Shown in pieces: positions 1,558 to 62,734 of a DNA stretch of 64,000 bases. Source of the stretch: Pavona decussata. Lineage: Eukaryota. The stretch's first letter is position 1. Each line of letters opens with the position of its first letter. Both the position numbers and the translations under genes were made by a program. The notes under the pieces were generated by a model. The model was not told where the DNA came from. It worked only from the letters and a program-made list of their open reading frames with translations, and did no database searches. The stretch lies in assembly GCA_977016875.1 (NCBI GenBank), contig CDRNST010000056.1, positions 2,356,001 to 2,420,000 of the forward strand, in the 5' to 3' direction.

Positions 1558-2883
1558 ATGGCTCTGGTTACTGAAAACTGGCAAACAACAAAACCCACCA
1601 TCACAGAAAGAACCAAGTTTATGCTCAACAACGATCTCTTCAGCGATGTGAAGTTTGTGGTTCGTAAGAGCGACGGTGAAAGTGAAAGTAAGCAAGTGAT
1701 TCCAGCTCACAAGTTTGTGCTGTCGATTGGCAGTCCTGTATTTGAAGCCATGTTTTACGGTGAGCTAGCCGAGACTAGAGACTCTATTGAACTGCCTGAC
1801 TGTGAATACGAGAGTCTGTTGGAATTGTTTCGTTACATGTACAGCGATGAAGTGAATTTGAGCGGAAGTAATGTGATGGGAATGTTGTACTTGGCGAAGA
1901 AATACATGGTGCCTTCACTCGCTGATAAATGCACGGAATATTTGCAAAATAACTTAGATCCATCAAACGTTTTCAGCATATTGTCATCTGCGCAGAAATA
2001 TGACGAGGGAAACCTCGTAGATCGATGCTGGGAAGTGATTGATAAACAAACTGAAGCGGCTGTGAAATCGGATGAATTTGCGACAATTGAGAGGCCCTTA
2101 CTTGAGGCACTGGTTGAAAGAGGAACGCTCGAAATAGCGGAAGTGGAGTTGTTCAAAGGAGTCGTCGAATGGGCGACAAAGGAATCGGAGAAGCGAGGCA
2201 TCGTTGCAGATGGACAAGAGAAAAGAAGAATTATTGGAGAACGGATCGTAAAAGCGTTACGCTTTCCTGTGATGAGCCTGGAAGAATTTGCCTCCGTTGT
2301 CGTAGACAGCAAAATTCTCACGTACGATGAACTTGGTAATGTAATCAAATATTTAAGTTCAGTACAAAGTCCTTGTAAGGGGTTTCTTATGACTAAAAGA
2401 TCCGGACCTTCTAGTAAATTAACGCGCTGTCGCAGGTTTAATTCAATGCAGTTTGGTTGGAAGAATTTGAACGAACAGCAATGCATACGTTTTTCAGTAG
2501 ACCGTGACATATTATTTCATGGAGTCAACATGTTTGGCAGCAAGGGCAATACTTATTCACTTAATCTTAGGGTTTGTGCGGTTTTCAGTAATGTTTTTGG
2601 CGGCTCTACAACAGGTACATTTCCATCGGTGGTCGACACTTCAGGAACGTATTATTGTTTTGATGTACTGTTTGAAAACCCGGTACCTTTAAAGAAAGAC
2701 GTCACATACCTTCTTGCAGCTAATGTCACTGGTCCTGATTCTTGGTACGGTACCCAAGGCCATTATACTCACTTGTGTTCTGGTGTTACATTTACTTTGG
2801 GAAACCATTATTTGTCTAATGAAGCCATAACAAACCCCACCCAAGGGCAATTTAATGAATTTATTTTCAGCCATTGCAAGTGA
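1558..2883 (+). CDS. BTBD6-like: BTB/POZ-BACK-PHR domain protein (BTBD1/2/3/6 family, Cullin-3 adaptor), copy 1, intact, 441 aa
   Basis: BTB motifs SDVKFVV, PAHKFVLSIGSPVFEAMFYG and YLAKKYMVPSL; BACK region (EVELFKGVVEWA, LRFPVM); PHR motifs (RF...GW, FSVD, GPDSWYG, GQF.EFIF). Uninterrupted ORF. Confidence 0.93.
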   Translation: MALVTENWQTTKPTITERTKFMLNNDLFSDVKFVVRKSDGESESKQVIPAHKFVLSIGSPVFEAMFYGELAETRDSIELPDCEYESLLELFRYMYSDEVNLSGSNVMGMLYLAKKYMVPSLADKCTEYLQNNLDPSNVFSILSSAQKYDEGNLVDRCWEVIDKQTEAAVKSDEFATIERPLLEALVERGTLEIAEVELFKGVVEWATKESEKRGIVADGQEKRRIIGERIVKALRFPVMSLEEFASVVVDSKILTYDELGNVIKYLSSVQSPCKGFLMTKRSGPSSKLTRCRRFNSMQFGWKNLNEQQCIRFSVDRDILFHGVNMFGSKGNTYSLNLRVCAVFSNVFGGSTTGTFPSVVDTSGTYYCFDVLFENPVPLKKDVTYLLAANVTGPDSWYGTQGHYTHLCSGVTFTLGNHYLSNEAITNPTQGQFNEFIFSHCK

Positions 2884-3241
2884 ATAAAAAGAGAGTGTTC
2901 AATTCATTAGCTAAGGAATTCGTGCTATTACAATTAATTAATCGTCGCGGAGAAAAATCGTAATGCTTTAATGGCTATGAACTGAGAAGGAAATTAGACC
3001 GGTTCTAAAACGATTTAATATTAACCTGTGATTGTTTGGTGGTACTTTTCGTATAATGTGCGCCATTTTGAAATTTGATCAAACGTAGCAAAAAATATGA
3101 ATGAAAGGTACACGGTAATAATCTGATAACAATAATAACAATGCAAAAATCTGGAATCTAGACAAAAATTGAAGCTCTGAACTTCAGACACCAGGGAGTA
3201 GAGATTTTTCTATTCAAATTTAAGATTCATTTGCGTGCAGT

Positions 3242-5044: not shown

Positions 5045-5970
5045 ATTGTAAGCAGCACTAGCACTACGTTTACTTCCGACTTAAAATTGATCAGATTTGG
5101 CTATAATTTAGGAAACGGCTTCTCAGTCCAGCATAGCCAATAGAAATTTATCCAGTAAACGTATACGATGGCTTGCGGGAACATATTTAGTCTAGTCCAA
5201 TGAGATGGTTTATGGAAAAAAATAAGGGCTAAAGTGATTTATTTTGAATAGTAAACAGCACTACGTTTATTTCCGACTAAAAATTATTCTAATTTGCCAA
5301 CTTCGGAAAACGGCTTGTCAGTCCAGGCAAGCCAATACAATTTACCCGGTCGTCGTATACGATGGCTTGCGGGAATATATTTAGAGACGGTTTACGGAGC
5401 AAAATAAGGGCTAAAATGATTTATTTTTTGATCGTAAGCACTACTAGTTTATTTCCGACTTAAAAATATTCAAATTTGGCAACTTCGGAAAACGGCTTGT
5501 CAGTCCAGCGTAACCAATACAAATTTACCCGGTCATCGTATACGATGGCTTGCGGGAATATATATTTAGGGATGGTTTGCGGAGTAAAATAAGGGTTAAA
5601 ACGATTTATTTTTTTATCGTAAGCAGCACTACGTTTATTTCCGACTTAAATTGATCAAATTTGGCAACTTCGAGAAACGCCTTCTCAGTCCAGCCTAACC
5701 AATACAAATTTACCCGGTCATCGTATACAATGGCTTGAGGGAATATATTTAGAGATGGTTTGCGGGAACATGTTAAGTCTAGTCCAATGAGATCAGATGG
5801 TTTACGGAAAAAAATAAGGGTTTAAACGATTTATTTTGGATCGTAAGGAGCGCTACGGTCATTTCAGACTAAAAAATTATTCAAATTTGGCAACTTCGGG
5901 AAACGGCTTCTTGGTCCAGCGTGGCCAATACAAATTTATTTCCGACTTTAAATTGATCAAATTTGGCATT
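5045..5970. repeat. Tandem array of ~5 diverged units of ~185-225 bp
   Basis: CACTACGTTTATTTCCGACTTAAAA...TTTGGCAACTTCGGAAAACGGCTT...CCAATACAAATTTACCCGG recurs at about 5050, 5250, 5435, 5620 and 5845. Confidence 0.9.
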
Positions 5971-9074: not shown

Positions 9075-9465
9075 TTACTTGAACGTTCTTATTTCGTAAA
9101 AAAAAATATGCCTCTTTTTACCGAAAACTGGCAAATAACAAAACCCACCATCAGAGAGAGAACCAAGTTTATGCTCAACAACGAATTCTTCAGCGACGTG
9201 AAGTTTGTGGCTCGTAAGAGCGATGGTGAAAGTGAAAGCAAGCAATTGATTCCAGCTCACAAGTTTGTGCTGACGATTGGCAGTCCTGTGTTTGAAGTCG
9301 TGTTTTACGGTGAGCTAGCGGAGACTAGAGACTCTATTGAACTGCCTGACTGTGGGTACGAGAGTCTGTTTGAGTTGTTTCGTTACATGTACAGCGATGA
9401 AATGAGTTTGAGCGGAAGTAATGTGGAAGTGTTGCACTTAGCGAAGAAACACATGGTGCCTTCAC

Positions 9466-9782
9466 CCCCCGAGGGGGGGGGGGGGGTACTCCCTTATATG
9501 GGCTATATAGGTATGTACGGCGCCAAAGGGTATGGTTTTTCGGCTGTTTTGGTCATAAATAGGGTATCGCTTTTAGCCATTTTGCTGCCATTTTGGTGAT
9601 AAATAGGGTATAGATTTTTGCACTCTAGTCCTGGGTTCGATTTTTTTTAGAAGAAGCTACTTCAGGTCATAAATAGGGTAGGGAAAATCGCAGGATTTGG
9701 TCATAAATAGGGTAAGGGTTTTGGAAAGCGGGCCGCACACCCCTACCCAATTTTTTTTGGAGTACCCCCTCCTCCCCCCGGG
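9466..9782. mobile_element. MITE with CCCG(G)nTACTCC TIRs and 8-bp TSD, inserted in the copy 2 CDS
   Basis: TSD GCCTTCAC at 9458-9465 and 9783-9790. Internal GGTCATAAATAGGGTA repeats. Confidence 0.9.
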
Positions 9783-10467
9783 GCCTTCACTCGCTGATAA
9801 ATGCACACAATATTTTCAAAATCACTCAGATCCATCAAACGTTTTCAGCATATTGCCATCTGCTCAGAAATATGACGAGAGAAACCTCGTGGATGGATGC
9901 TGGGAACTGATTGATAAACTGAAGCGGCTGTGAAATCGGATGGATTTGTGACAATTGAGAGGCCCTTACTTGAAGCACTGGTTGAAAGAGAGACGCTCGA
10001 AATAGCAGAAGTTGAATTATTCAAAAGAGTCGCCGAATGGGCGACAAAGGAATCGAAGAAGCAAGGGATCGTTGCACATGGGCAAGAGAAAAGAAGAATT
10101 ATTGGAGAACGGATCGTAAAAGCCATACGCTTTCCCGTGATGAAGCAGGAAGAATTTGTTTCTGTGGTTATCGACAGCAAAATTCTCACGTATGATGAAG
10201 TTGGTAATGTATTCAAATATTTAAATTCAGTACAAAGTCCTTTTGTGGGTTTTCCTGTGACCAAAAGATCCGGACCTTCTAGTAAATTAATGCGCTGTCG
10301 CAGGTTTAATTTAATGCAGTTTGGTTGGAAGAATTTGGACAGAGAACACAGCATTGTTTTTTCAGTAGATGGTGACATACTTTTTCATGGAGTCAACTTG
10401 TTTGGCAGCAAAGACAATACTTACTCAGTTAATCTTGAGCTCTTCGCTATCACTGGAATGTACTTCT

Positions 10468-11486
10468 TAATGCGCCGATCAACTCGAAACTTCAACATCC
10501 CCCCCCCCCCCCCGGGCAAACCCCGGGCATTTGAACTTAGAAGATTGGATCGTTCAAATTCCCGCCCCCTCGGGCCAAAATGGTGTTCAAATGCCCCACC
10601 TTATCGTCGGATTTGTCTGTCAAATGCCCCTCCTAAAGAACAATCGTTGTCGGCTCCTGTCATGAGTTACTACAAAAACCACAACGTTAACGAGTCGGAC
10701 AATGTCAATCAGCAAGTGTAAGCTTTTCTAACTCCGAAACACGGCAAAGGTTGTTTAACGAGAAATACATATAAATAACATATTTAAAATGAGTTAGCCG
10801 CTTACGTAGCTGTTCGAGTGGAGTTTAAGCCAAGGCGGCGGTTTTTCATTCGACAATGTTTTTTTTTTTCTTTAACTGTTCACTGCTGTTTTATGGCTAT
10901 TCTAAAAACCTCTGCAGACACAAATGCGGGAGAAAGGCGCAGCTTGACTCATTGCATAAAAAACTACATCGTTTAAAGAACTAGAAATACATATTGATTA
11001 GTTAGCCGGCTACGTAGAATGTTGTTCGAGTGGCAGGATATTCTGCAATTTGAGCCAAAGCGGTTTTTCATTCGACAGTGTTTATTTCTTTCACTATTCA
11101 CTGCGGGACAAAGCCGCAGCTTGACTCATTGTATAAAAAATCTACATCGTTTGTATACAATCTATAAAAATAATTAATATTTAAGCACTCTCACTTTTGA
11201 AGACCTTTTCTTGTAAGCTTTTCTTGTAATGCTCCATCTCGTCCAAACACGTGTTTATAGCTGTTAGCAACTTCGCCCCCCCCCCCCCAAAAAAAAGCGA
11301 TTTGAAACCTGACACTTCCGGTTCAATTTTCCCCACCCCACCCAGGCAAGGTCAAATTCCCCACCCCGGGGAAGGCCTTACCCGATCAAATTCCCCACTC
11401 CCGGGCACAGAAAATAGTCAAATGCCCGGGGTTTGCCCGGGGGGGGGGGGGGGGGATGTTGAAGTTTCGATTTGATCGGCGCATAA
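10468..11486. mobile_element. Non-autonomous DNA transposon with ~65-bp TIRs, inserted in the copy 2 PHR region
   Basis: ATGCGCCGATCAA.TCGAAACTTCAACATC(C)nGGGCAAACCCCGGGCATTTGA is inverted at both ends. BTBD coding sequence resumes at ~11488. No clean TSD. Confidence 0.88.
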
Positions 11487-13730
11487 GACAAACGGTTCTT
11501 GCTACTAGAATAAGTAAATTTCCATCCGTCGTCGACGTGTCAGAAGAATGTTATTGTTTTGATGTACTGTTTGAAAGCCCGATACCTTTAAAGAAAGACG
11601 TCTCTACTGTCTTAATGCTGAAATCACTGGTCCCGATTCTTGGTATGGTACCCAAGGCCACCAGACTCAACTTTGTTCTGGTGTTAAATGTACCTTGAAA
11701 AACAATTATTCTCTTTTGGATAACAAAACTGACCTCACACAATAGCAATTTAATGAATTGATTTTCAGCCCTTGCAAGTGAACAAAGAGCGCTCATTTCT
11801 CAGGTACAGAGAGGTAAAGTGACCTGTTGTGAAAATAATTATTCGTCGTGAAGAAAATCGTAATGATTTAATGGTTGTAAAGGAAATTAGGCCGCGGTAA
11901 GAGGATTTAAGTTTCACCTGTGATTGTCTGGTAGAACGTTTCGCATAATGTACGCAATTTATTGGAGGAAACATGGCACGAAAAATATGAATGAAAGGTA
12001 AACAGTAAGCTAATGTAAAATAACAATGCAAAAATTTCGAATCTGAAAAAACTGAAGCTGTAAACTTAAGATAGCAGAATTTGATATTCAAATTTAAGAT
12101 TATTTTGGGTGCAATCGACATCAGTTTAGTTTTTTGTTACAAGCTCAATTTACAGGTTGATCGGTCAATTAAAAAATAACCGATTGTACGCTTTCCATCC
12201 CAACTAAATCCCTTAAAATAGGGTAGTAATATTGTTAGAAGAGTTGCTGTTCATTTCTATATATTAACGGTAGTTTTAAATCAATTAATTCAACGTTATT
12301 CTTGGTTAATTTTCCTGGAGAAGGAAAGTTGAAGGTAGTTGGCTTGTCTGTGCGCGTAGAATTGCGATTGCTGAACATGTTTGTATTAGTTTCCAAGCGA
12401 CCTTAAAACTTTCGGGCTAGCTTGATCTGGTAGAAGTAGGTTTCTAGTAGGCGTAGAAGTGAAAATTAAAGTACTTTCCCCATCAGCTATAAATGCGCGG
12501 TCAATTGATTGACGCTAATTCGGGATTGAAAAGTCAACCAAAATGTTGGTTTTTTCTCTTGTTTAAAAGAGTTTTAAACAGAAATCAAGTACAGACTTCT
12601 TTTTCACTGTTAGCAAACGGCGAGATTTCAAAGATCGCACGAGCTAATCTTGCGTTGTTGACGCAATTGTAAGTTTGTCCTGATTTGAAACGGGTAGCTT
12701 CTGATTGGTTCACAACTGATTCATATTAACCAATCACACACCTGGGTGACTCTAACATTAATGTGTTGTTTACTGGCCCGTGTCTCATCCGTGGAGGGGT
12801 GCTCAAAAAGGGTGAAGCAGTAAAAAAGTTGTAAAGTGTACAGGTAATGGCTTTTTTGACAAAATTTGTGACTATATACAGTCACAGGGGCAAATAAGAA
12901 TCTATTAGTGTAGCATTTTACTGTAATAAAACTTGTAGCTCTCAAATTCATTTGAGGGTTTGTAGACCTGATAGGTATATAATCAATCGATTTGCTTTTT
13001 GCAATGCTTATCAATAGACCTTTTTCATAAATGGCGGCCGATTTATTATTCTTTTCAATATATGTTAACTGCTCACTGCATAAACTTTCTTCAGTTCTAT
13101 TCTTTCCTCAAAATACCCATGAATCATGGCAAGAAAGGGGATTTTTGTCTGATAATTAATTCATTATTGTGTTTTCAGTAGATCAATAATCCCTCAAGGA
13201 TTCGAGTTAAAGACTGCCTGAAAAATGTTTCATGCTTAAGGAACCCGAAAATATTATTTTAGGTCAGTAAACCGTCTGGTCAATACTCTTTGAAGTAACA
13301 CTTTGCGGGAAAAATTGCCATTTGTACCTGCCATCAGGAAAGCTATGTTTACTTTCATGCTCGTCCAGTTTCTTTATATTACTAAATGGGTATTTGATTT
13401 TAAGGCAGTCAGCTGGTGGCCTATTTTCTCTCTCTCATTGGCTTCGCTGATCCTGTCTCTTGTATTACCCCTCTGCAGTCACGTTTCAAAATTGTACGTT
13501 TATTTGTCGTCAGACAATTAGTGGAGGCAGGAACTTGGCGGTATAATAAGAGTGTGAAGAGAGTCATATTCTTTTTTTTTTTGTTTTTGTTTGACTAATG
13601 ATTTCTTACGAGCTAGCGGTCGAAGCGGTCATGATTGAGGCTATTTGACGGGAGATTAAAAAATTTTATCGTGTAGGGTGTTTATATGAAGTTTTCGATG
13701 TCTGTCGCGGTCTGTCCTAGTTCCTTCTAC

Positions 13731-18997: not shown

Positions 18998-19374
18998 CAT
19001 GTGATGGTGCCTGTTAAAACAGGCCACTCAACACACAGCGCGCTTTGTTGCACGGATCGAATAGAACCTGGCTTTGTTACCTTCAACAACGCGCAACATG
19101 TCGAACGGCAAGGGAAAACATTAAGCCATTCATGGTGGTCTGCAGCGAGCAAGTCTAGACATCGCTCAACATTTGTTGAGCAACAACCGGTTACACTGTT
19201 GCGCTATATGTCAATAGTTTCAAATTTCGCACTGTTGCACCTGACAGTCACGCATATTAAATTTGGCTAGCTATATACCACTGTATAGGTTACCTGATCT
19301 CTCATTACTTTGGAGTAAAATATACTCAGTGATTTGTTTCTTGTTTGAACGTTGTAATTTTGGTAAAGAAGATC

Positions 19375-20677
19375 ATGGCGGTCGTTACTGACAAAAACTG
19401 GCAAACAACAAAACGCACCATCAGAGAGAGAACCAAGTTTATGTTCAACAACGATCTCTTCAGCGATGTGAAGTTTGTGGTTCGTAACAGTGATGGTGAA
19501 AGTGAATTGAAACAGGTGATTCAAGCTCACAAGTTTGTGTTGTCGATTGGCAGTCCTGTGTTTGAAGCTATGTTTTACGGTGAGCTAGCGGAGACTAGAG
19601 ACTCTATTGAACTGCCTGACTGTGAGTACGAGAGTCTCTTGGAGTTTTTTCGTTACATGTACAGCGATGAAGTGAATTTGAGCGGACGTAATGTGATGGG
19701 AGTGTTATACTTGGCTAAAAAGTACATGGTGCCTTCACTGGATGACAAGTGCTCGAAATATTTGAAAAATCATTTAGATTCATCAAATGTTTTCATCATT
19801 TTACAATCTGCCCAGAAATATGAAGACAAAAATCTCGTAGATCGATGCTGGGAAGTGATTGATGAAGAAACTGAAGCGGTTGTGAAATCGGATGAATTTG
19901 CGACACTTGAGAGGCCCTTACTAGAGGCACTAGTCGAAAGAGAAACTCTGGGCATCTCTGAAGTGAAATTGTTCAAAGGAGTCGTCGAATGGGCGACAAA
20001 GGAATCGGAGAAGCGAGGCATCGTCGCAGATGGCCAAGAAAAGAGATTCATCAAATGTTTTCATCATTTTACAATCTGCCCAGAAATATGATGAGAAAAA
20101 GAAAAATCTCATAGATCGATGCTGGGAAGTGATTGATGAAGAAACTGAAGCAGTTGTGAAATCGGATGATTTTGCGACACTTCAGAGGCCCTTACTAGAG
20201 GCACTAGTCGAAAGAGATACTCTGGGCATCTCTGAAGTGAAATTGTTCAAAGGAGTCGTCGAATGGGCGACAAAGGAATCGGAGAAGCGAGGCATCGTCG
20301 CAGATGGCCAAGAAAAGAGAAGAATCATCGGAGAACGAATCGTAAAAGCCTTACGCTTTCCAGTGATGAAACAGGAAGAATTTGCCTCCGTGGTCGTTGG
20401 CAGCAAAATCTTCACACACGATGAAGTCGCAGATGTGATGAAATGTTGTGGTGCAGTGCAAAGTTCTCCTGTGGTGTTTCCAGTGGTAGAAAGATCTGGC
20501 CCTCCTAATAAATTAGTACGCTGTAGTAGATTTCGCTCATTGCAGTTTGGTTGGAGTAATGGCAGCACCAGGTTACATTTTTCAGTAGACAGCAACATAA
20601 AGTTTCACGGAGTGCACTTGTTCGGCAGCAAGGAAAATTCTTATACAGTAACTCTTAAACTCTTGTCAGGTTCCACT
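19375..20677 (+). pseudogene. BTBD6-like: BTB-BACK-PHR copy 3: frameshifted by an internal 268-bp duplication and truncated in the PHR domain
   Basis: Close paralog of copy 5. 19776-20043 is repeated from 20044. Homology to copy 5 ends at LLSGST (~20677). Confidence 0.9.
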
Positions 20678-20686
20678 TGTCAGGTT

Positions 20687-21038
20687 CCAGTGTTGGGCGT
20701 GGTTGGTTCCCCCTCTTCCTTGGCCGCGCGGTACACTTATCCCGATAATGTAACTGTCTGTTGGCCCTCAGGATTTTCTAAAGAACCAATGCGAACATTA
20801 GCTGTTACAGTGCATATTCTGCCTTGAACGTTTTCATTGCTCACTGACGAGTTCCGCCTTGTTGGAGAAGGATGACCGTCACCAGAAACGTGAACGTTCT
20901 GTTCAGCCGGCACCTGTTTCTCTTCGAGTGAAGCGGAATCTTCTTTAGTGGTTTCACTTGTTTCTGAAGGTAGCGCAACCTCAGTTGTTGACGGTAAAAT
21001 GTTTTGCTGAGAAGAACCAAGACTTTGGCGAGACATAC
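20687..21038 (-). pseudogene. Duplicated fragment of the last exon of the 31650-35701 gene
   Basis: High identity to ~32017-32368, with an in-frame TAA at 20737-20739 on the - strand. Confidence 0.9.
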
Positions 21039-22336: not shown

Positions 22337-23656
22337 ATGGCTCTGGTTACCGAAAACTGGCAAACAACAAAACCCACCATCAGAGAGAGAACCAAGTTTA
22401 TGCTCAACAACGATCTCTTCAGCGATGTGAAGTTTGTGGTTCGTCAGAGCGATGGTGAAAGTGAAAGTAAGCAAGTGATTCCAGCTCACAAGTTTGTGCT
22501 GTCCATCGGCAGTCCTGTGTTTGAAGCCATGTTTTACGGTGAGCTAGCGGAGACAAGAGACTCTATTGAACTGCCTGACCGTGAGTACGAGAGTTTGTTG
22601 GAGTTGCTTCGTTACATGTACTGCGATGAAGTGAATTTGAGCGGAAGTAATGTGATGGGAGTTTTATACTTGGCGAAGAAATATATGGTGCCTTCACTCG
22701 CTGGCAAATGCACGAAATATTTGCAAAGTAACTTAGATCCATCAAACGTTTTCAGCATATTGCCATCTGCGCAGAAATATGACGAGAAAAACCTGGTGGA
22801 GCGATGCTGGGAAGTGATTGATAACCAAACTGATGCGGCTGTGAAATCGGATGGATTTGCGACAATTGAGAGGCCGTTACTTGAAGCACTGGTTGAAAGA
22901 GAAACGCTCGAAATAGCGGAAGTGGAATTGTTCAATGGAGTCGTCAAATGGGCGACAAACGAGTCGGTAAAGCGAGGCATTGTCGCAGATGGGAAAGAGA
23001 AAAGACGAATTCTTGGAGAACGGATCGTAAAAGCCATACGCTTTCCTTTGATGAAGCAGGAAGAATTTGTTTCTGTGGTTATCGACAGCAAAATTCTCAC
23101 GTATAATGAAGTTGGTAATGTAATCAAATATTTAAATTCAGTGCAAAGCCCTTTCGTGGGTTTTCCTATGACTAAAAGATACGGGCCGTTTAAAATGCGC
23201 TGTCGCAAGTTTAATTTAGTGAAGTTTGGTTGGAAGAATTTGGGCAGACAACACGGCTTTGCTTTTTCAGTAGATGGTGACATACTTTTTCATGGAGTCA
23301 ACTTGTTTGGCAGCAAGGACAATACTTACTCAGTTAATCTTGACCTCTTCATTATCGGTGGGCAAGTTCTTGCCACTAGAGGAAGTGAATTTCCATCCGT
23401 CGTCGACGTGTCAGGAGAATATTATTGTTTTGATGTACTGTTTGAAAACCCGATTCCTTTAAAGAAAAACGTCACCTACGGTCTTGTTGCTGAAATCATT
23501 GGTCCCGATTCTTGGTACGGTACTCAAGGCCACCATACCCAAATTTGTTCTGGTGTTAAATTTACCTTGAAAAACTATTTTTCTCTTGCGGAAAACAGCA
23601 CTGGCATCACGCAAGGGCAATTTAATGAATTGATTTTCAAAGATCGCACGAGCTAA
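22337..23656 (+). CDS. BTBD6-like: BTB-BACK-PHR copy 4, intact, 439 aa, altered C-terminus (KDRTS)
   Basis: Full ORF with all BTB, BACK and PHR motifs. Confidence 0.92.
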   Translation: MALVTENWQTTKPTIRERTKFMLNNDLFSDVKFVVRQSDGESESKQVIPAHKFVLSIGSPVFEAMFYGELAETRDSIELPDREYESLLELLRYMYCDEVNLSGSNVMGVLYLAKKYMVPSLAGKCTKYLQSNLDPSNVFSILPSAQKYDEKNLVERCWEVIDNQTDAAVKSDGFATIERPLLEALVERETLEIAEVELFNGVVKWATNESVKRGIVADGKEKRRILGERIVKAIRFPLMKQEEFVSVVIDSKILTYNEVGNVIKYLNSVQSPFVGFPMTKRYGPFKMRCRKFNLVKFGWKNLGRQHGFAFSVDGDILFHGVNLFGSKDNTYSVNLDLFIIGGQVLATRGSEFPSVVDVSGEYYCFDVLFENPIPLKKNVTYGLVAEIIGPDSWYGTQGHHTQICSGVKFTLKNYFSLAENSTGITQGQFNELIFKDRTS

Positions 23657-27560: not shown

Positions 27561-27930
27561 GTTAAAACAGGCCATTCAACACAAAGCGCACTTTGTTGCA
27601 CGGACCCAATATTTGAACCTGGCTCTGTTGCGTTCAACAACGCGCAACCTGTCGAACGGCAGGGGAAAACATTAAGCCATTCATAGTGGTCTGCAGCAAG
27701 CAAGTCTAGACATTGCTCAGCATTTGTTGAGCAACAACTGTTAAATAAACACTGTTGCACTGTATATCAATAGTTTCAGATTTCGCACTGTTCCCCCTGA
27801 CAGTCACGCATATTAAATTTGGCTAGCTATATACCACTGAATAGGTCACCTGATCTCTCATTACTTTGGAGTAAAAGATAATCAGTGATTTGCTTCTTGT
27901 TTGAATGTTGTAATTTTGGTAAAGAAGATC

Positions 27931-29247
27931 ATGGCGGTCGTTACTGACAAAAACTGGCAAACAACAAGACCCACCATCAGAGAGAGAACCAAGTTTATGT
28001 TCAACAACGATCTCTTCAGCGATGTGAAGTTTGTGGTTCGTAACAGTGATGGTGAAAGTGAATTGAAACAGGTGATTCAAGCTCACAAGTTTGTGCTGTC
28101 GATTGGCAGTCCTGTGTTTGAAGCTATGTTTTACGGTGAGCTAGCGGAGACTAGAGACTCTATTGAACTGCCTGACTGTGAGTACGAGAGTCTCTTGGAG
28201 TTTTTTCGTTACATGTACTGCGATGAAGTGAATTTGAGCGGAAGTAATGTGATGGGAGTGTTATACTTGGCTGAAAAGTACATGGTGCCTTCCCTGGCTG
28301 ACAAGTGCTCGAAATATTTGAAAAATCATTTAGATTCATCAAATGTTTTCATCATTTTACAATCTGCCCAGAAATATGATGAGAAAAATCTCATAGATCG
28401 ATGCTGGGAAGTGATTGATGAAGAAACTGAAGCAGTTGTGAAATCGGATGATTTTGCGACACTTCAGAGGCCCTTACTAGAGGCACTAGTCGAAAGAGAT
28501 ACTCTGGGCATCTCTGAAGTGAAATTGTTCAAAGGAGTCGTCGAATGGGCGACAAAGGAATCGGAGAAGCGAGGCATCGTCGCAGATGGCCAAGAAAAGA
28601 GAAGAATCATCGGAGAACGAATCGTAAAAGCATTACGCTTTCCAGTGATGAAACAGGAAGAATTTGCCTCTGTGGTCGTTGGCAGCAAAATCCTCACACA
28701 CGATGAAGTCGCAGATGTGATGAAATGTTTTGGTGCAGTGCAAAGTTCTCCTGTGGTGTTTCCAGTGGTAGAAAGATCTGGCCCTCCTAATAAATTAGTA
28801 CGTTGTAGTAGATTTCGCTCATTGCAGTTTGGTTGGAGTAATGGCAGCACCAGGCTACATTTTTCAGCAGACAGCAATATAAAATTTCACGGAGTACACT
28901 TGTTCGGCAGCAAGGACAATTCTTATACAGTTACTCTTAAACTCTTGTCAGGTTCCACTGTTCTAGCTTCTACAGACGGTACATTTTCATCGGTGCTCAA
29001 CGTATCGGCAGAATATTACGGTTTCGATGTGCTCTTTGCAAAACCGATACCTTTGATAAACCATGTCGTATACACCGTTAAAGCTGATATTAATGGTCCA
29101 CGATCTTGGTACGGTATCAATGGACGCGATTTGCTTGTTTGTTCTGGCGTTGCATTTACCCTGAGGGAACAGTCAGTCCGTTTGCAAACCAAAACTAGTA
29201 TCGCACGAGGGCAATTTGATGAATTCATTTTCAGTTTTCGAAAGTGA
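27931..29247 (+). CDS. BTBD6-like: BTB-BACK-PHR copy 5, intact, 438 aa from ATG 27931
   Basis: Full ORF with all family motifs. The ATG aligns with the starts of the other copies. Confidence 0.92.
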   Translation: MAVVTDKNWQTTRPTIRERTKFMFNNDLFSDVKFVVRNSDGESELKQVIQAHKFVLSIGSPVFEAMFYGELAETRDSIELPDCEYESLLEFFRYMYCDEVNLSGSNVMGVLYLAEKYMVPSLADKCSKYLKNHLDSSNVFIILQSAQKYDEKNLIDRCWEVIDEETEAVVKSDDFATLQRPLLEALVERDTLGISEVKLFKGVVEWATKESEKRGIVADGQEKRRIIGERIVKALRFPVMKQEEFASVVVGSKILTHDEVADVMKCFGAVQSSPVVFPVVERSGPPNKLVRCSRFRSLQFGWSNGSTRLHFSADSNIKFHGVHLFGSKDNSYTVTLKLLSGSTVLASTDGTFSSVLNVSAEYYGFDVLFAKPIPLINHVVYTVKADINGPRSWYGINGRDLLVCSGVAFTLREQSVRLQTKTSIARGQFDEFIFSFRK

Positions 29248-50200: not shown

Positions 50201-53200
50201 GACCGCGTTTTTTTAATAAATAGACCTGGAAGCTAGTACTCTTTTGGGAACGAAATTCCTGCTCGACAGAACAACAATCTTGCGTTTTTCCTCTATTCAG
50301 TCTCGCTTACCTTTCAAAATATTAAGGATAAGGCTTAGCACCACCCCACTTCCCGGGGGAGGTGTGGAGTACCACGAGTAGTTTCCCATCGTGCCTTGCA
50401 TGGGCCGCCGGAATTTAGCTTTGTAGTTCTTTAAATCATCCAGGGTGAAAATTCCCCCGCCATCTTGACTGTCTTGAACGATATCCTTGGCTAGTTCGCC
50501 GTTATAAAAATCCTCTGGGTCGTCGCGGATTCGTTCGAGGGTTTTGGCAAATGTGGGCATATACAGAGTTTCTCCTAGTTTCTTCAGTTCACCGTCTTTG
50601 TTAAACAGAAGCGCCCTTCAAACAAACAAGTAATTCAGCTTACCACTTCAATATCACTCACCTATCGTGAATCTCAGTTTAAAGGTCCTGTTAATCTTAT
50701 GTTGAACTTTCTAACTTTTGTATAGTTTCCTTTATATAGTGCTGTTCATTATGCTTGCTATAAGATGATTTTACTCTTGTTTCTGTGAAAAAAACTGATG
50801 TGGCCATTCAAATGCCTGTGAAAACATGTGCAAAGGAATGACTTTCCTGTATGTCGTTTATGATGGTGTACAAGTTTACTGTAACTTTTCTAAAAGTTAC
50901 TGAAAAGTCTGTGGATGAAATCCTTATAGGTCCCACTACCTACTAACATATATCCATTCAAGTGAAAGTATTTGAAATAGTTGAGCATGCAGTACTTTCC
51001 TTTGGAACTGTCTATTACGCTGCACAAGAAGACATTGACTTCTGGGTCTGGATAAAATCCTTAAGTTTCACTCTTCAAAAAACCTGGTGAGAAGTCCTTT
51101 GGTATGGCCTTCTTTGTTTTGGAATATTTAAAAGTTGCTTCCATTTGGTTTCTTTACTCTCGAACTTAAAAATCTTCAGCAAAGTACAGGTCTTGAATCA
51201 GTCAAAACAAGCTTAACTGGGCACTGTCACGGAGATTTTGCTGTAAGTTGGCCAATTAAAACTGCTCAAATATTTGACAAAGAACCTCTTTTCTAACATT
51301 AAATTGCCCTTACAGCATTAGGAGGAAAATATGATATAACTTCTCCGTGAAAGAATAAAATATAATTAGTTTTTTTTAAAGCAATCAGTTCCAAATTACT
51401 CAGAAGGACCTTGAAAAAATTGGCCAATTTTTTCAAGCTGCAATCCATTTTCATCCTAGCCATCCGCAGCCACAGATGAATGAAACTAGCTTCTGTGCAC
51501 TAGTAAGGTTATTGATAACAAAATTGAACCATTATTTTAACGTTTGCAACTATACAAATATGTTTCCTGGCTATTCAAAGTGACACCAAAAATATACGAC
51601 ACTGCCCCTTTAACAAGCTAACCTATGACCAGGATCTTTCTTGAGAAGTGGTGTATAACGCGTTCGTGTCGCAGCATAGTGAGCGGAGTAGCCGAACGGA
51701 AACCCGTTTCTCGCCATGTCGATGGAAGGCTGTACAAGATATTTCCATTCCATTTTGCCGTACTTTTTCCAGGCTTCGTAGAATCCTTTCACCTCCCCAG
51801 GTACCCCGGCAGCCGTCGCACCTATTCAACAGATAAATACAAAAGTTACGCTAGAATCTCAAGCTCCGGCAACACACATCCGTGTTCTATCGGTTTATTT
51901 TTATTTTTATTTTTATTTTTTTATTTAGACTCTATCAATCTCGTACCCAGAGTCCTCCGGCTTTTTGGTCAGCGGGTGGTCGCCAGTAGAGACTGGACTG
52001 GACTGGGCACTGTAATTTTTTAACCGCAGGTCTTCTGCGGTAAAACAATGGCAGCCGTTACGGGACAGCCAATCAAAAAGTCCCTACTGGCGATCACCCG
52101 CTGACTAAAAAGCCAGAGGACTCTGGGTACGGGATTGGACTCGTACACGTACAGTCTCAAGTAAGAATACACGTTGACGGGCAAAACAGACTTTTGACTA
52201 ACAAAGACGGATCGAAACGCAACAATCACTCTTTTCCTTTTTCTGAGAGTCATATCAAGAACCGTTCCAGATTCTCAGATGGCCAGATTGGGTGATAACA
52301 ACATAACTTACCTAATCTAGAGTCCATTTTCCCCCCGACATACATTGTTCTGTTGGCCTTGCCAGGAGCTTCTTCACGGAAGTCGATAACCTCCACAAAA
52401 TTTGTGCTCTTGTTATACACAACAATAAATCCCCCACCTCCGACTCCAGCGGAATGCATGTTGTAGACTCCGATGCAAAACAGTGAGGCAATCGCCGAAT
52501 CCATAGCTGTTCCCCCTTTTTCCAGAATATCCCGCCCAATCTCCGAGCAAGGACCAGCGTCTGATGCCACAACGGCGTGTTTATAGGGGCCATCGGCCCC
52601 CGGGGGCCCGGTTGGAGGGGGGTTTATAGGTTTTGGGGTTGGAACGGCTGGTTTGGACTTCTTCTCCCTTGTGAAAACAACAGCTAATGCAATGATGATT
52701 GCCAGAACTATGACGGCAGCCAAGACAGCAGCAATGATTAGCCACCTTTTTGACCTAAAAAAGAAAAAGGAGAAACATTTTAGTTGTTTGAACCGCAATT
52801 CGCTAACTTGCAAAGCTCGAGGAAAGCGCAGAATCGCTATTTCGAGAAGTTCGCGGTTAAATGATGATGATGATGATGATGATGAATTAATAGACCGCGA
52901 ATAGTCTCTTGTTTTTGTTCAGAGATAGCTGAGCGAAGCTTCTGTAGTTGGACGTTGTTGTTTTGTCTTTTGAAAAGCGCAGGTTGCTATAGAAATTATT
53001 ACGCATAAAGCATCAAATTCACGTTTACATTGTAATTAAATGCATGTAAACATATACACACAGAAATTCGCGTTAATTAAATGCATGTAAAAAAAAAACT
53101 TTTCGAATATTCGCGTTAATTTTATAACGCGTAGATTTTGTTCGCGTTGTTAAAATGTTTCGTTATATTCCTATGATATGGTAAGTAAAAAGGAATCTCT

Positions 53201-54836: not shown

Positions 54837-55285
54837 AAAACATTTTTAGAGATCATTCGTTTGACGTGGAATAGGCCGTTTACGTGTTGCCTCATTACAA
54901 AAGCAAGGCTTAGTGCAAAGCTTTTGACGTAAAAATTAGTTTTGCTTGTATATGAATACATACATACTTTATTTAACGTGCACGGAAAAACATACTTAGC
55001 TATTCGCTAGTTTCCAGGTGCTCCACGATTTAAAATTAAGTAATGAACAATCATGATCTCTAAAAACATTTTTAGAGATCATTCGTTTGACGTGGAATAG
55101 GCCATTTACGTGTTGCCTCATTACAAAAGCGAGGCTTAGTGCAAAGCTTTTGACGTAAAAATTAGTTTTGTTTGTATATGAATACATACATACTTTATTT
55201 AACGTGCACGGAAAAACATACTTAGCTATTCGCTAGTTTCCAGGTGCTCCACGATTTAAAATTAAGTAATGTACAATCATGACTA
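54837..55285. repeat. Near-identical 226-bp direct tandem duplication
   Basis: CATTTTTAGAGATCATTCG at 54841 and 55067, with only a few mismatches. Confidence 0.92.
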
Positions 55286-57295
55286 TAAAAAAAAACTTAT
55301 TTACATCGAGCTTGAAATTGAAATTTAGAATTTAAAATTAGTCGGAAAATATCAAAAAATTCGACAAACTAAATGTGATAAATTATAAGTCAACGGGTAT
55401 TAACATGAAAATCAGTTTGTCGAATTTTCTTCCAAAAGTCTTTTGAACCTGCCACGGAACGAATATCTCGAGGAAATGTGTTCCAGTGCTTTGAATTATC
55501 ATGGGATTTTTGACCTCTTTTGTTAAAAATGGTGAAATAAGACTTTCACTTTGCTACGAAATAATTCTAGAACAACGAGAGGAGAGAAATCAACTCAATT
55601 CTTGACAGGAACAACACGTCTCTGTTCTAGCGCATTTTGGAAACAAAAATACAAAAACTTGAAAAACATTAAGCCTAATATTTTTCAAGTTTCAATCCAT
55701 ACCGGCCTACTCTGTCTCTGGCCAGAGGCACTAATCGACAGTTTTATTGCACTGGGATGATAATTTTTTAACAAAACTAGTCAATAACTTTTTGTTTCTG
55801 TTGTCAAACAAACATTTCTGGGTTTTGAAATGACATCAAATTTTCGTGATACTTCCCCTTTAAGTCCGTATCTGGTAGTGTTCACTTTAGGTATAGAAAG
55901 AATTGGTCGTACTCTGCTCTCTCTTCAGTTATAAGATTATTAAAGCTGGATGGGGCCTTGCCTTGATGAAAAATAACTTTAAAAATAAAAACTATGCATG
56001 AAGCCTCGCTTTCATAATGAGGTTCAAAGCAACTGATCCCTAAAAACGTGCGTGCAGTTTACTGTACAGGCTAAAATTAATCCCTTCAGGCGACTGATAT
56101 ATCCGAATTCAAAGATCGTGTGATCTGCATTCCATATGTGCAACACTAGATTTTCCTCAAAATTACATGCAGACTTTACTCGAGGAACAAATATCGATCG
56201 CGGATCGATTTGTAACGTGACAGCTTGTCCACATAGATTAAGGAAATCAAATAATTGTATACTTCTATGAAAGAAGTGTAAACCGGTTTATTCAAACGCA
56301 TTGCATCCTTCCTATATATAATATTTATAAAATTATACAACCGTAATTTTACGGTAGAATTCTCAAAACAAAAAACACGCACACACACAAAAAAAACAAA
56401 AACAAAACTACAAAATACACACAAAACAACGTGTATAGTATTTGCATATCATGATCAACAGAATAAACGTTTCTTTTCTCTCACTAGCCTGCGAACGCAG
56501 ACGTATTTCCGGTTGTCGCTTCTCTCCGCCGGAGAGAAGCGACCGGCCGGAAATACGTCTCCGTATTTGGAAGAATCTTTACTGATTAGGCATCAAACTC
56601 GAATCAAAGTTCAGGTAAATCCAGGATTAGCTTAATCGAGCTTCAAACAACTGGGCCCAGATGTCAGACTTGAGTACTCGATTATTCAAAAACCGTTAAC
56701 TGAAAATCGATAGAAATTCGAAGATGGATTGTAAAAATCTAAAATGGTAAAGGTGCGATTTTTATCCAAGCCCTGCATGAAAGGAAATAATAGAGGCAAT
56801 GATTACTTTGGGGACAAGCAGAGGCGTTACACTTGTAACAACAAAATATCATAATCTTCTTTTATTAGTTATTGTAACTTATTCCCTTAGTTCTTTTTTA
56901 TTTTAAACCTCTTCATTTTTGGTTCCTCACTTGTCATTAATTTCTTAACATCATGACGTAATATGGAGGCCAACTAGAAAATCGGATGGTTAACTTGGCC
57001 TCCATCCTCAATCGCTACCTGAAAATTATTCAAAATAAATTAAACAAAATTTTACCAAACAAGAATATGGAATGTAATTATAACAATCTTTCTAATTAAT
57101 CATGAGGAAAATAAAGGTTGTTGTTGGATCCAGAAAGAGGGAGCCAAAAAAAATTGTGGCGAGGGCCAAGAAACTTTAAAAAAAAGCAAGAAAAACGCGA
57201 GGGGCGGGGCCCTCTCGCACTTAGCGCACCTCCCCCACTCCCCCCCCCCCCAAAAAAAAAAGTCCGCCCCTGACAAATGATTACATAACGGAAAA

Positions 57296-57311
57296 GGATA
57301 GGATAGGATAG

Positions 57312-57344
<33 letters not shown>

Positions 57345-59260: not shown

Positions 59261-61468
59261 TCTTGTAAGCATTCTTGTAAGAGTTTTATACGGAATGAAA
59301 AAACAACTGGATTCCCCCATTCGGCAATAAATACTGAATACATTACAATAAATAACATAAGCACCACACTTCACTAATAACATAAAACTGTGTTGAGGCA
59401 GACACATAACTCGACTATCGGTTGTTATCCATTTTTGTCAATCGATAACAATCGATTGCCGTAATATCAATTGGTTTCCGATGTCAATTTCTATCAAGCA
59501 TTTACGTCTGATTAGACGATGCGTAACACTGCACGTTTGATAACAAATGTCGGATGGGTCGGAAAGTAACTTGAATGTTAGAGCAATGATTCCTTCGAGT
59601 GCGCGCATTGCAGATTCTCCGGCAGTCAAATTCCGCTATGCTTATAGGATGTTTTATTGTCGTATTCATTGAACCAGTGCCAGTCCGGTTTTTACACGTA
59701 CCACCTTTTTTATAGGGAGGGGGAGAAGAATTGGACCGGTTATACCAAAAAAATTCCTTCAAAGGTTTTCGGGAATAAAAGAGTCCATTCACCGCACAAC
59801 AGGGTAATCAAAATGTTCAAGAACATTTCACGCATGACTTTTCGTTGCGAATGAAAAAAATGTGTACAGGACGGACATTTGCTCAAAACCTCCCTTCTCA
59901 AAATGAAAAAGTTATTTTTACTATCGACATCAACAAATCGTCCGAATAGTTCGAAGCTGAAGTCAAACAGAGAAAATTATTGACCTTGAAAAAAGATGTC
60001 TTCATCATAGCATGCAAAGTTTTCTCTTCGATCGGATGTCGGATGGAGTCCTGGACGATGAATAGAAAAACATTTCCTCAGCATTTATTTACTTAATTAG
60101 GGTTTATAATTTTGGAGTTTTACCCTTGCATATACTCTCATTTCCATAATTCTTTAAAAATAACTTCACACTTGACGGAAGTCTTTTAGCAAAAGTCGCC
60201 GTCTGGAGTCTAGAGTTCGCTAGAGTGATAATTCTTCTTTGTTTCAATTGTCAACGGATACATTGTGAGCGTCACGTTGTTGGCTGCAGGCCGTATGCGT
60301 GAGAAAAATGGCTTCGTCTTTTATATTCTGAAATAGAAAATAAAAAAACAAAAACAGACCCCAACAAAAAAACCACGAAGTTGGTGGTATTGCGTAAGAA
60401 AGCCAAATATTTGGCGCTGAACCCTGACAGAAAAATGCAAAGATCGCTTCTCAGTTCCATTCTTTCCCATTCCGCGTCGTCCACACCCATTCTTTACGCA
60501 GCTCCACCGATGAAATTTTCCCACATTCCTACGAGCCATGAGGGCTAGACTGAAAGTGATGATCGACTTATGCTATAACTTAACTTGTTTCGGCTGTGTT
60601 AGCGACAGGAAGTCTTATACTTTAAGTTAAGAAAAGGTTGATTTCGACCCGAAGGCCGCGGCGATGAACCGTGTAAAAGAGTTGAATATTAATGGCATGT
60701 CACTTACTTTTAGTATTAAAATAGTTTTCCAGTCCTGCGTAATGTTACGTTATTTTCGTAAAGCTTAAGGTCAGCATCAGATAATAAATTTGGGAACTAA
60801 TTTCCGTCCCCGTTCCCAACAACTTTCTGCAACTTAATTTTCAGCTTTAGATTCCGCGTACAGATCAACCTATTTTAGCCCGTAAAAACAAATATGCCTT
60901 AAATGGCCGCGGCACAAAACGATCTGGAAACACAGAGGACAACATTAAGACTATTTTCCGTAAATGTTCTCGTTCGGCGGAGCAAAAATAGCCTAAGAAC
61001 ACAGACGTATTTTCGACTGTCAATTCTCTCCGCCGAAAAAGAGCTCTCATTTGAATTTGAATGTAGTTTTTGGCAAGTGTTTCTTTATTCGATGATTACA
61101 TAATATGCGCATCAGATGGATAATTAATTCTTATAACCTTGAGAGGCTGCCCGTGGCCTGTTTTGTTTTGCAGTTATAAATAAATACCTGTACGTATATG
61201 ATTATTTTTACCCCGCGCTTACAACTTCCTTTCTTAATTAAAAGTCATCATAATCAAATCATATCAGATTGATCAATGTTGCTTACACTAACACTAAGGC
61301 GTACATTTTCTTAGTATAGAAAACTCCAAACTAACTCAATCGGCGCTTAATTACGGTATAGCCTCAATGAATTGCCGCAATCACTCTCAATTCTCCGTCG
61401 AGCCATCCGCCAACCGCGTCTCTAACAAAAAACAAAGTGAATGAGTTCAATCTTTTGAAAAAGATATC

Positions 61469-62734
61469 ATGGCTACAGAATTCTGGCAAACGACAAGACC
61501 TAGCATCAGAGAGAGAAACAAGTTTATGCTCAACAACCATCTCTTCAGCGATGTGCAGTTTGTGGTTCGTCAGAGCGATGGTGAAAGTAAGCAAGTGATT
61601 CCAGCTCACAAGTTTGTGCTGTCGATTGGCAGTGCAGTGTTTGAAGCCATGTTTTACGGTGAGCTAGGGGACACTAGAGACTCTATTGAGCTGCCTGACT
61701 GTGAGTACGAGAGCCTGTTGGAGTTTTTCCGCTACCTGTACAGCGATGAAGTGAATTTGAGCGGAGGTAATGTAATGGGAGTGTTATACTTGGCGAAGAA
61801 ATACATGGTACCTTCAGTGGCTGAGAAATGCACGGACTATCTGCAAAATAATCTGGATCCATCAAATGTGTTCGTCGTCATGCAGTTTGCTCTGGTATAT
61901 GAAGAGAAGGACCTGATCGATCGATGCTGGAAAGTAATCGACGAACACGCAGACGCAGCTGTTAAATCGGATGGATTTGCGACACTTGAGAGGTCCTTGC
62001 TTGAAGATGTTGTTGAGAGAGATACTCTAAATATCAGAGAAGTTGAATTGTTCAAAGGAGTGGTCGAATGGGCGTCAAAGAAGTCAGAAAAACGAGGCAT
62101 CGTGGTTGATGGGCACGAAAGAAGAGGAATTATCGGAGAACGGATCCTAAAGGCTATACGCTTTTCCGAGATGAAAGAAGACGAATTTAATTCCGTGGTC
62201 GTGAAAAGCCAACTACTCACGTTTGACGAGGTAAAAAACATAACAAACCGTTTCAAATCGATGTCAAGTTTTTGCGAGGAGTTGTCAGTGATCACAAGAT
62301 GCGGTCCTTCTCGTCGCCCAGATCGTCTTTGCAGGTTCCCTTCAGCAAAGTATGGTTGGATTGGCTTTGAAAGGGTCTATTTCTCCGTGGACAGTGACAT
62401 AAGGTTCCATGGAGTGTACTTGTTTGGCAAGGAGGATAGTTCGCATTCCGTTGGGCTTACGCTTAAGAAGACAGAAGAAAAAAACATTCTTTCCTCTACA
62501 GAAGGTAAATTTTTATCTCTGCGTCACGAGTCAGGGGACTATTTTGGGTTTGACGTTTTATTTCAAGAACCAGCATTTCTGAGGAAAGACATCGTTTACT
62601 GTCTTCACGCCGTTATCAACGGTCCTAAGACTTGGTACGGTGTCAATGGAAACCGTGCAATTCAACGTTCTGGTGTGACATTTACTTTTTACGCTACAGA
62701 AGGCCAATTAAGTGAGTTCATTTTTAGCTTCTAA
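61469..62734 (+). CDS. BTBD6-like: BTB-BACK-PHR copy 6, intact, 421 aa, most divergent copy
   Basis: Full ORF with all family motifs and shortened PHR loops. Confidence 0.92.
   Translation: MATEFWQTTRPSIRERNKFMLNNHLFSDVQFVVRQSDGESKQVIPAHKFVLSIGSAVFEAMFYGELGDTRDSIELPDCEYESLLEFFRYLYSDEVNLSGGNVMGVLYLAKKYMVPSVAEKCTDYLQNNLDPSNVFVVMQFALVYEEKDLIDRCWKVIDEHADAAVKSDGFATLERSLLEDVVERDTLNIREVELFKGVVEWASKKSEKRGIVVDGHERRGIIGERILKAIRFSEMKEDEFNSVVVKSQLLTFDEVKNITNRFKSMSSFCEELSVITRCGPSRRPDRLCRFPSAKYGWIGFERVYFSVDSDIRFHGVYLFGKEDSSHSVGLTLKKTEEKNILSSTEGKFLSLRHESGDYFGFDVLFQEPAFLRKDIVYCLHAVINGPKTWYGVNGNRAIQRSGVTFTFYATEGQLSEFIFSF

Follow-up and report, generated by a model that had tools for sequence, protein, structure and literature searches.

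How can a gene family keep one half of its protein almost constant while the other half changes in sequence and length from copy to copy? The question is raised by a 64-kb stretch of a 602-Mb coral assembly (G000:C56:2356001-2420000, the whole of which is called the window below), which carries an array of single-exon genes for proteins with BTB, BACK and PHR domains. The array probably belongs to a large, lineage-specific family of BTBD6-like CUL3 adaptors in which the BTB half is uniform and exposed patches of the PHR domain diverge at an approximately neutral rate. An earlier note on this DNA had proposed a repertoire of intracellular recognition proteins directed at foreign proteins. Nothing in the data bears on immunity, symbionts or viruses, and diversifying selection is not demonstrated.

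A tblastn search of the window with copy 1 returns exactly six BTB-BACK-PHR loci, all on the + strand. Four of the six (copies 1, 4, 5 and 6) are intact single open reading frames and two (copies 2 and 3) are broken. The description of six single-exon paralogues, four intact and two dead, which had been made from the sequence alone, is therefore confirmed by tblastn and Pfam. The six copies, together with the landmarks of copy 1 used below, are as follows.

1558-2883, + strand: copy 1, intact, 441 aa, single exon (open reading frame, Pfam); Pfam domains BTB aa 23-132, BACK aa 139-214, PHR aa 293-438
1558-1902, + strand: homogenised 5' tract of copy 1, codons 1-115, covering the N-terminus and most of BTB; an equivalent tract is present in every copy
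1765-1773, + strand: phi-X-E motif L70-A71-E72 in the BTB domain of copy 1 (alignment with KLHL3 and BTBD6)
2434-2871, + strand: PHR domain of copy 1, aa 293-438 (Pfam PF08005, E = 4.8e-21)
9108-11778, + strand: copy 2, pseudogene (tblastn pieces in frames 3, 1, 3, 2, 1)
19375-20734, + strand: copy 3, pseudogene, similar in sequence to copy 5 (tblastn)
22337-23656, + strand: copy 4, intact, 439 aa
27931-29247, + strand: copy 5, intact, 438 aa counted from the ATG
61469-62734, + strand: copy 6, intact, 421 aa, divergent, with a short patch-4 loop

The first 300 nt of copies 1 to 5 are 91-95% identical. Copies 1 and 4 differ at 8 of 110 BTB residues and at 55 of 145 PHR residues, copies 1 and 5 at 12 of 110 and at 75 of 142 (47% identity in the PHR domain). 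The 8 differences in about 107 BTB residues that the earlier note attributed to copies 1 and 5 are thus those of copies 1 and 4, whereas its statement that copies 1 and 5 differ at roughly half of their PHR residues is correct.

The six copies are only a few of the more than 100 intronless BTBD6-like genes that make up a lineage-specific family. Searched against its own genome, copy 1 gives 97 full-length matches, scored among 477 first-look candidates, and almost all of these are stop-free single frames in tandem arrays on C56, C84, C129, C45, C36, C215 and C66. Of 188 candidates scored with the Pfam PHR model, 150 are matches; some 97 of these are in uninterrupted frames 400 aa or longer and the others, about one-third of the 150, are fragments, broken copies or exons of different genes. 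The closest named proteins are all scleractinian (Pocillopora, Stylophora, Montipora, Porites and Oculina). The family is expanded in several further coral genera, and a different coral assembly in ENA holds a tandem pair 5 kb apart, one member of which is the nearest relative of copy 1.

The turnover of this family is of the birth-and-death type in tandem arrays, as had been claimed: two of the six window copies are broken and near-identical recent duplicates are present. Copy 2 contains at least three frame changes, about 320 bp inserted after residue 120 and about 1 kb (10481-11483) inserted within PHR. In copy 3, a 274-bp tandem duplication inside BACK (19776-20320, 95% match) has shifted the frame, and the protein match covers residues 1-226 and then residues 127-362, where it stops, leaving PHR truncated near residue 362. 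The DNA past the truncation (20687-20986) is 94% identical to 32017-32316, in direct repeat. It is a copy of part of the Ser/Thr-rich open reading frame region described below, which replaced the lost 3' end of copy 3 and marks the truncating rearrangement. Copy 5 has a near-identical twin (L008 versus L011; synonymous divergence, dS, 0.01-0.03) at G000:C56:2349315-2350622, 34.6 kb upstream and just outside the window, and the upstream DNA of copies 3 and 5 is 95% identical (19193-19492 versus 27749-28048). Both likenesses reflect very recent segmental duplications. The nearest relative of copy 6 is an inverted neighbour just past the end of the window.

Sequence and predicted fold place these proteins in the BTB-BACK-PHR (BTBD1/2/3/6) subfamily in every comparison made. 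In all four intact copies Pfam detects a BTB domain (PF00651, E = 2e-26 to 2.5e-23), directly followed by BACK (PF07707, E = 4e-9 to 2.5e-12), and a C-terminal PHR domain (PF08005, E = 7e-15 to 5e-21). The best sequence matches among solved structures in the PDB are the BTB domain of human BTBD6 (2vkp, E = 3e-29), the PHR domain of BTBD2 (3no8) and the PHR domains of MYCBP2. An AlphaFold2 model of copy 1, built from 91 coral homologues, has a predicted local distance difference test score (pLDDT) of about 85-97 over BACK and PHR (>90 in PHR); the modelled PHR is a beta-sandwich of 11-12 strands and residues 135-267 are all-helical. Foldseek matches the modelled PHR domain to that of BTBD2 (3no8, E = 1e-12, template modelling (TM) score 0.84) and to those of MYCBP2 (TM 0.78-0.86), and the BTB-BACK region to parts of KLHL11-, KBTBD2- and KLHL22-CUL3 complexes.

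In KLHL and SPOP adaptor complexes, the BTB motif that contacts CUL3 is phi-X-E. The corresponding residues of copy 1, L70-A71-E72, align with M-S-E in KLHL3 (KLHL3-Cul3 crystal structure, 4hxi) and with L-A-E in human BTBD6. Among the 91 coral homologues L70 is invariant, and A71 and E72 are conserved in at least 90%. Judging from this motif, the proteins of the family are presumed CUL3 adaptors. The proposed architecture thus agrees with the Pfam, PDB and Foldseek matches and with the conserved phi-X-E motif. The functional division proposed with it stands in part: the Cullin-3 motif is kept, but the choice of substrate by the C-terminal domain is an assumption, as discussed below.

The homogenised BTB end

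The codon and tree analyses cover 47 intact copies (50 loci were collected) of the approximately 100 that are intact in the genome. In sliding windows, the proportion of synonymous differences (pS) between arrays is 0.13-0.26 over codons 1-115, rises across codons 105-135 and reaches 0.7-0.9, that is saturation, from about codon 130 onwards. Over 1081 pairs the median pS is 0.26 in the 5' part versus 0.70 in the 3' part, and the 5' value plateaus near 0.3 however far the 3' part has diverged.

The two parts of the gene also have different histories. Copies from the C56 and C129 arrays are intermingled in the BTB tree, which has a star-like shape, whereas the PHR tree parts C56 from C129 cleanly. 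Under approximately unbiased (AU) tests neither part accepts the tree of the other: the whole 3' topology is rejected by the 5' data with delta lnL 106 (p = 1e-65), the 5' topology by the 3' data with delta lnL 1314 (p = 2e-49). The 5' data do not, however, reject A+C as a group (AU p = 0.42).

Diversity at third positions within BTB averages 0.13, versus 0.33-0.41 elsewhere; its distribution is low with a single mode and is no mixture of frozen and saturated sites. The GC content of third codon positions (GC3) is 0.50 in BTB versus 0.31-0.40 in the rest of the gene, as expected under GC-biased gene conversion. Non-coding DNA upstream of the genes shows no such homogenisation, even inside the window clade.

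It therefore seems likely that the first ~350 bp of these genes evolve in concert by gene conversion, on top of purifying selection. The latter would itself enable conversion by keeping the BTB sequences alike enough to pair. The earlier note had foreseen that its proposal would fall if the BTB similarity came wholly from gene conversion and the PHR domain drifted neutrally. Part of the BTB constancy is indeed homogenisation, the 5' pS being three to six times lower, but purifying selection contributes too (ratio of nonsynonymous to synonymous rates, omega, ~0.26).

Variable patches and selection in the PHR domain

Four variable patches had been named beforehand between the framework motifs of the PHR domain. 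They are real and their lengths vary. Their positions in copy 1 are as follows.

2449-2490, + strand: variable patch 1, aa 298-311, beta2-beta3 hairpin and outward face of beta3 (posteriors, entropy, model, length)
2578-2595, + strand: variable patch 2, aa 341-346, beta5-beta6 loop (posteriors, entropy, model, length)
2704-2724, + strand: variable patch 3, aa 383, 385, 387 and 389, alternate residues of strand 384-391
2800-2844, + strand: variable patch 4, aa 415-429, long length-variable loop before the last strand (pLDDT ~81-83)

Across the 47 copies, 19 PHR sites have a posterior above 0.9, all of them within residues 298-311, 342-346, 383/385/389 and 415-429, and they coincide with the four patches. 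Thirteen of these 19 sites lie in loops, which make up 36% of the domain in the modelled secondary structure. The remaining top sites alternate with conserved residues on strands 304-314 and 384-391, an alternation by which the variable residues would point outward, towards the solvent. The variable loops are beta5-6, beta7-8, beta9-10 and beta11-12, and several loops at the opposite end of a simple meander are conserved (GSK, GPxSW, SG). Placed from modelled secondary structure, this pattern suggests that the variability sits at one apex of the sandwich. Mapped in this way on the predicted fold, the variable sites appear concentrated in a few solvent-facing patches rather than scattered or buried.

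Two further observations concern the patches. Within patch 4, the most variable loop, most paralogues have a semi-conserved N-x-T/S (NGTS, NKTS, NSTG or NITG, at residues 421-427 of copy 1); as the proteins have no signal peptide, glycosylation there is not expected. Shuffling of patches as cassettes between paralogues was also considered: a table of patches in tree order, read without a formal test, shows no obvious sharing of motifs across clades.

Codon likelihoods were obtained with a purpose-written program implementing the GY94 model under fixed-branch-length approximations, and not with PAML or HyPhy. The site models were run without recombination breakpoints inside PHR, and recombination among paralogues would further inflate such tests of this domain. 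Over the 47 copies the one-ratio omega is 0.31 for BTB, 0.29 for BACK and 0.58 for PHR. A site-class test with uniform dS, of the PAML M-series kind, gives twice the log-likelihood difference (2dlnL) = 145.6 for PHR, with 17% of sites at omega ~2, and 3.2 and 0.2 for BTB and BACK, respectively. With a FUBAR-like two-dimensional grid, in which the synonymous rate may vary, the PHR value over all copies falls to 7.7. The signal of the per-domain codon models is thus confined to PHR when dS is uniform, but is mostly gone when it is not. In the four clades taken separately, uniform-dS values of 107, 29, 44 and 194 become, in the same order, 8.5, 7.3, 3.2 and 25.8. In parametric bootstraps of the test with synonymous-rate variation, the observed value is reached or exceeded by one of 40 null simulations for the window clade (p ~0.05) and by none of 40 for the C84 clade.

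The latter corresponds to the C84 array (G000:C84:2.25-2.46 Mb), the youngest subfamily (L029, L032, L037-L041, L043, L044, L046-L048 and L050). Its omega over the whole PHR domain is 0.97-1.14, it gives the strongest signal that survives synonymous-rate variation (2dlnL = 25.8), and its BTB sequences form a separate homogenised pool.

Circularity in the choice of sites was avoided by cross-validation, the patch sites of each clade being chosen by their entropy in the other clades. The resulting patch omega is 1.57 (p = 0.023, window clade), 1.09, 0.79 and 1.51 (p = 0.08) in the four clades, and that of the framework is 0.54, 0.43, 0.59 and 0.97 in the same order; pooling the clades gives a patch omega of 1.1-1.3 (p = 0.04-0.4). 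When changes are counted without a tree in 20 independent sister pairs, the patch dN/dS is 0.99 (p = 0.94 versus neutrality), with 0.56 for the PHR framework, 0.26 for BTB and 0.27 for BACK. In the nearest cross-assembly pair the patches have 21 nonsynonymous and 3 synonymous changes, a count that alone is not significant. On average, therefore, the PHR patches evolve at approximately the neutral rate. It is possible that some sites or episodes exceed this rate, and positive selection on PHR is only suggestive.

These estimates bear directly on the proposal of an intracellular non-self repertoire, in which the PHR patches would be pervasively diversified against viral, symbiont or transposon proteins and these would be degraded by way of CUL3. 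A class of sites with omega >1 is indeed favoured in PHR alone under uniform dS (145.6 over all copies, 29-194 per clade), and the window-clade patch omega of 1.57, the bootstraps of the window and C84 clades and the 21 to 3 excess of nonsynonymous changes are in the same direction. The variable sites are, in the model, surface loops. Elsewhere on the contig, the conserved promoter block of another subfamily contains GAS-like and ISRE-like sites, and the BTBD6 expansion of a symbiotic vent snail was classed under immunity (PMC7895826). However, the all-copy signal collapses under synonymous-rate variation, the pooled patch omega is 1.1-1.3, and the sister pairs do not depart from neutrality. 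Recombination between paralogues, demonstrated for the 5' half, inflates site-model tests; the window copies have no immune-type motifs upstream; and the other vent-snail paper takes the same expansion as neural (PMC7736800). A non-self repertoire of this kind is considered unlikely.

A patch dN/dS of 0.99 would also be expected from non-adaptive amplification of a BTBD6-like retrogene by a duplication-prone region, which would leave largely redundant copies with drifting, never constrained PHR loops, many of the copies being on the way to becoming pseudogenes, and a BTB that looks constant only as the conserved, conversion-prone part of the gene. The PHR-wide omega of the youngest clade, the fragmentary or broken state of about one-third of the PHR matches and of two of the six window copies, the recent segmental duplicates and the evidence for gene conversion all fit this account. 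It accords less well with the approximately 97 copies that have full-length open frames and with omega values far below one in BTB/BACK (~0.27) and in the PHR framework (~0.56; p = 1e-33 to 6e-9), from which it follows that most copies are selected as proteins. Subfamilies whose synonymous divergence is saturated are still intact, so that copies persist for a long time, and the expansion is found in several other coral genera as well. Purely non-adaptive amplification seems rather improbable.

The preferred reading, a family of CUL3 adaptors with a uniform BTB half and PHR patches diverging near neutrality, can be put together as follows. The family gains and loses members through duplication, both tandem and segmental, through unequal crossing-over and through decay into pseudogenes. 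Its products would most likely be cytosolic or nuclear CUL3 adaptors, which would dimerise and bind CUL3 through BTB and the first part of BACK. Purifying selection (omega ~0.26) keeps this front half uniform, and gene conversion among arrays would homogenise it down to the synonymous sites in about the first 350 bp. The core of the PHR beta-sandwich is retained (omega ~0.55), while four exposed loops or strand faces change in sequence and length nearly neutrally, perhaps with episodes of positive selection, so that each paralogue presents a different PHR surface. This would presumably be a binding surface, its diversity being the selected trait.

Several observations weigh against this synthesis. 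The lowest 5' pS of any distant pair is about 0.08 and none is near zero, so that no young conversion tract has been caught. In addition, the ratio of 5' to 3' pS is alike at several depths, and a contig from another coral likewise has a lowered BTB pS (0.26-0.29); constraint at the nucleotide level could partly account for the low synonymous divergence of BTB. The BTB part of the AlphaFold2 model is of low confidence (pLDDT <50), the likely reason being the near-invariance of the alignment in that region. Exact-protein look-ups with copies 1, 4, 5 and 6 returned genome assemblies only and no transcript contigs. Finally, the sole characterised substrate of a Btbd6 protein, zebrafish Plzf, is recruited through BTB-BTB heterodimerisation and not through PHR (bioRxiv 10.1101/575910). 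By analogy, the PHR domain may not be the recognition module at all, and that it picks the substrate is therefore an assumption for the coral family.

This last point can be developed into an explanation of its own, in which targets that themselves contain a BTB domain would be captured by heterodimerisation, PHR would mainly tune localisation and its loops would be free to vary. The recruitment of Plzf, the role of both PHR and BTB of Btbd6 in nuclear localisation (bioRxiv 10.1101/575910) and the extreme uniformity of the coral BTB are consistent with this. Such an explanation nevertheless gives no reason why upwards of 100 paralogues should be retained if they all capture their targets with identical domains. 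Moreover, variation confined to particular loops and one strand face around a conserved core resembles an interaction surface, and the Plzf result comes from one preprint, about one vertebrate protein. This explanation is thought very improbable.

A uniform BTB would, on the other hand, let paralogues heterodimerise freely across the family. It is conceivable, if a long shot, that conversion keeps the BTB domains of more than 100 paralogues interchangeable, so that any two can pair and each dimer displays two PHR surfaces. Were these combinatorial CUL3 receptors to exist, corals would be able to recognise foreign or symbiont proteins with thousands of specificities encoded in the germline, and the receptors would be an intracellular counterpart to immune receptors with constant and variable regions.

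Promoters and the remainder of the window

Within 700 bp upstream of the four intact window genes, no gamma-activated sites (GAS) or interferon-stimulated response elements (ISRE) were found. Isolated GAS- or ISRE-type matches occur within the same distance in 5 of 14 window-clade copies. A 2.2-kb JGI contig with the homologue L052 was considered as a possible transcript; it lacks a poly(A) tail, the type of sample behind it is unverified, and it is not counted as expression.

A conserved proximal promoter block is found in a subfamily outside the window, at 2.64-2.88 Mb on C56 (L013, L016, L017, L020-L023, L025, L027, L030, L034 and L035), 250-500 kb downstream. The block extends from about -230 to 0 before each ATG and contains a GAS-like site, TTCTCAGAA (~-215), an ISRE-like site, GAAAGTGAAA (~-178), and a site resembling a cAMP response element (CRE), TTACGTCACGC. 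The homology begins about 12 nt upstream of the GAS-like site. None of these sites is present in the window copies. The whole 230-bp block is uniformly conserved by descent, and its GAS-, ISRE- and CRE-like sites are therefore not independent evidence.

The heptamer GTCACGC is present in the 350 bp upstream in 6 of 14 promoter groups, including those of copies 1, 4 and 5, although the promoters that contain it are otherwise unalignable; in one subfamily it is part of TTACGTCACGC. Judged by its sequence, it is possibly a shared element of the basic leucine zipper (bZIP) type or of the xenobiotic or hypoxia response element (XRE/HRE) type.

Outside the six copies the window consists of unrelated DNA. 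On the - strand, 31650-33593 is an open frame of 647 codons, rich in Ser, Thr and Glu, with internal repeats (e.g. ...MTVSEYFGA.SEEDVNLSRQSLGTSHQ...) and no Pfam match; it probably belongs, as a disordered exon, to an unrelated gene. Also on the - strand, 52253-52813 is an exon for the N-terminal part of a gamma-glutamyltranspeptidase (PF01019, E = 1.8e-24), so that a multi-exon neighbour gene interrupts the array between copies 5 and 6. Carriage by a transposon was considered, and ten intergenic open reading frames gave no reverse transcriptase, transposase or integrase match, the gamma-glutamyltranspeptidase exon being the only hit. Antisense open frames lie opposite BACK in copy 1 (1833-2510, - strand, 225 codons) and copy 4 (22612-23283, - strand, 223 codons), and shorter ones face copies 5 and 6. 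All of them probably arise incidentally from codon usage. There are two non-coding tandem repeats, one at 5060-5765 with a 185/368-bp unit in about three copies, and one at 54837-55291 with a 226-bp unit in two copies of 97% identity.

Comparison with known systems

Corals are without adaptive immunity and must discriminate symbionts, pathogens and viruses intracellularly. For a system of sorting or restriction inside the cell, more than 100 ubiquitin-ligase adaptors in which one docking half is constant and one surface is diversified are a concrete candidate that can be put to the test. Should the immune reading fail, the family still offers a clean natural case of two regimes within a 1.3-kb gene, split at a domain border. 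It also matters for selection scans and gene-family counts in corals, since models with uniform dS gave a very strong signal that was mostly lost under careful tests.

The closest counterparts are the vertebrate BTBD1, BTBD2, BTBD3 and BTBD6, four conserved genes with multiple exons. The coral proteins have the same domain order, a similar PHR fold (TM 0.84) and an L-A-E identical to that of human BTBD6. They differ from this small set in being encoded by more than 100 tandemly arrayed single-exon genes, in which the BTB part is homogenised and the PHR loops are hypervariable.

As in the coral, the same family has undergone tandem expansion in another symbiotic marine invertebrate: hydrothermal vent snails have 56 copies of BTBD6 in Chrysomallon and 35 in Gigantopelta (PMC7736800, PMC7895826). 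The expansion was labelled 'nervous system' in one of the two papers (PMC7736800) and 'immune' in the other (PMC7895826). Unlike the present analysis, these papers, which concern an independent expansion in molluscs, treat copy number only, without work on separate domains, PHR patches or concerted evolution. No equivalent description of a BTBD6 expansion in corals or other cnidarians was found when the literature was searched with coral and cnidarian terms.

A second comparison is with the MATH-BTB (BATH) and F-box adaptor expansions of nematodes and plants, reportedly treated by Thomas in 2006 and said to show positive selection in the binding cleft. By analogy, the coral family may share with them a constant cullin-docking domain, a variable binder, tandem arrays and birth-and-death turnover. 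The variable domain is MATH or FTH in those families, whereas in the coral it is PHR and positive selection is only suggestive. To our knowledge, homogenisation of synonymous sites in BTB is not a described feature of the MATH-BTB and F-box families.

A third comparison is with multigene families in which conversion homogenises a constant part next to a divergent variable part. The coral genes share with them a sharp boundary inside the gene between low and saturated dS, incongruent trees and raised GC3. They differ from concerted-evolution families in general in that the boundary is the BTB/BACK border of a ubiquitin-ligase adaptor, and in that no individual conversion tracts are resolved. 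Tandem expansion of BTBD6 was thus already known in other invertebrates, and the split of regimes within the gene is an interesting addition.

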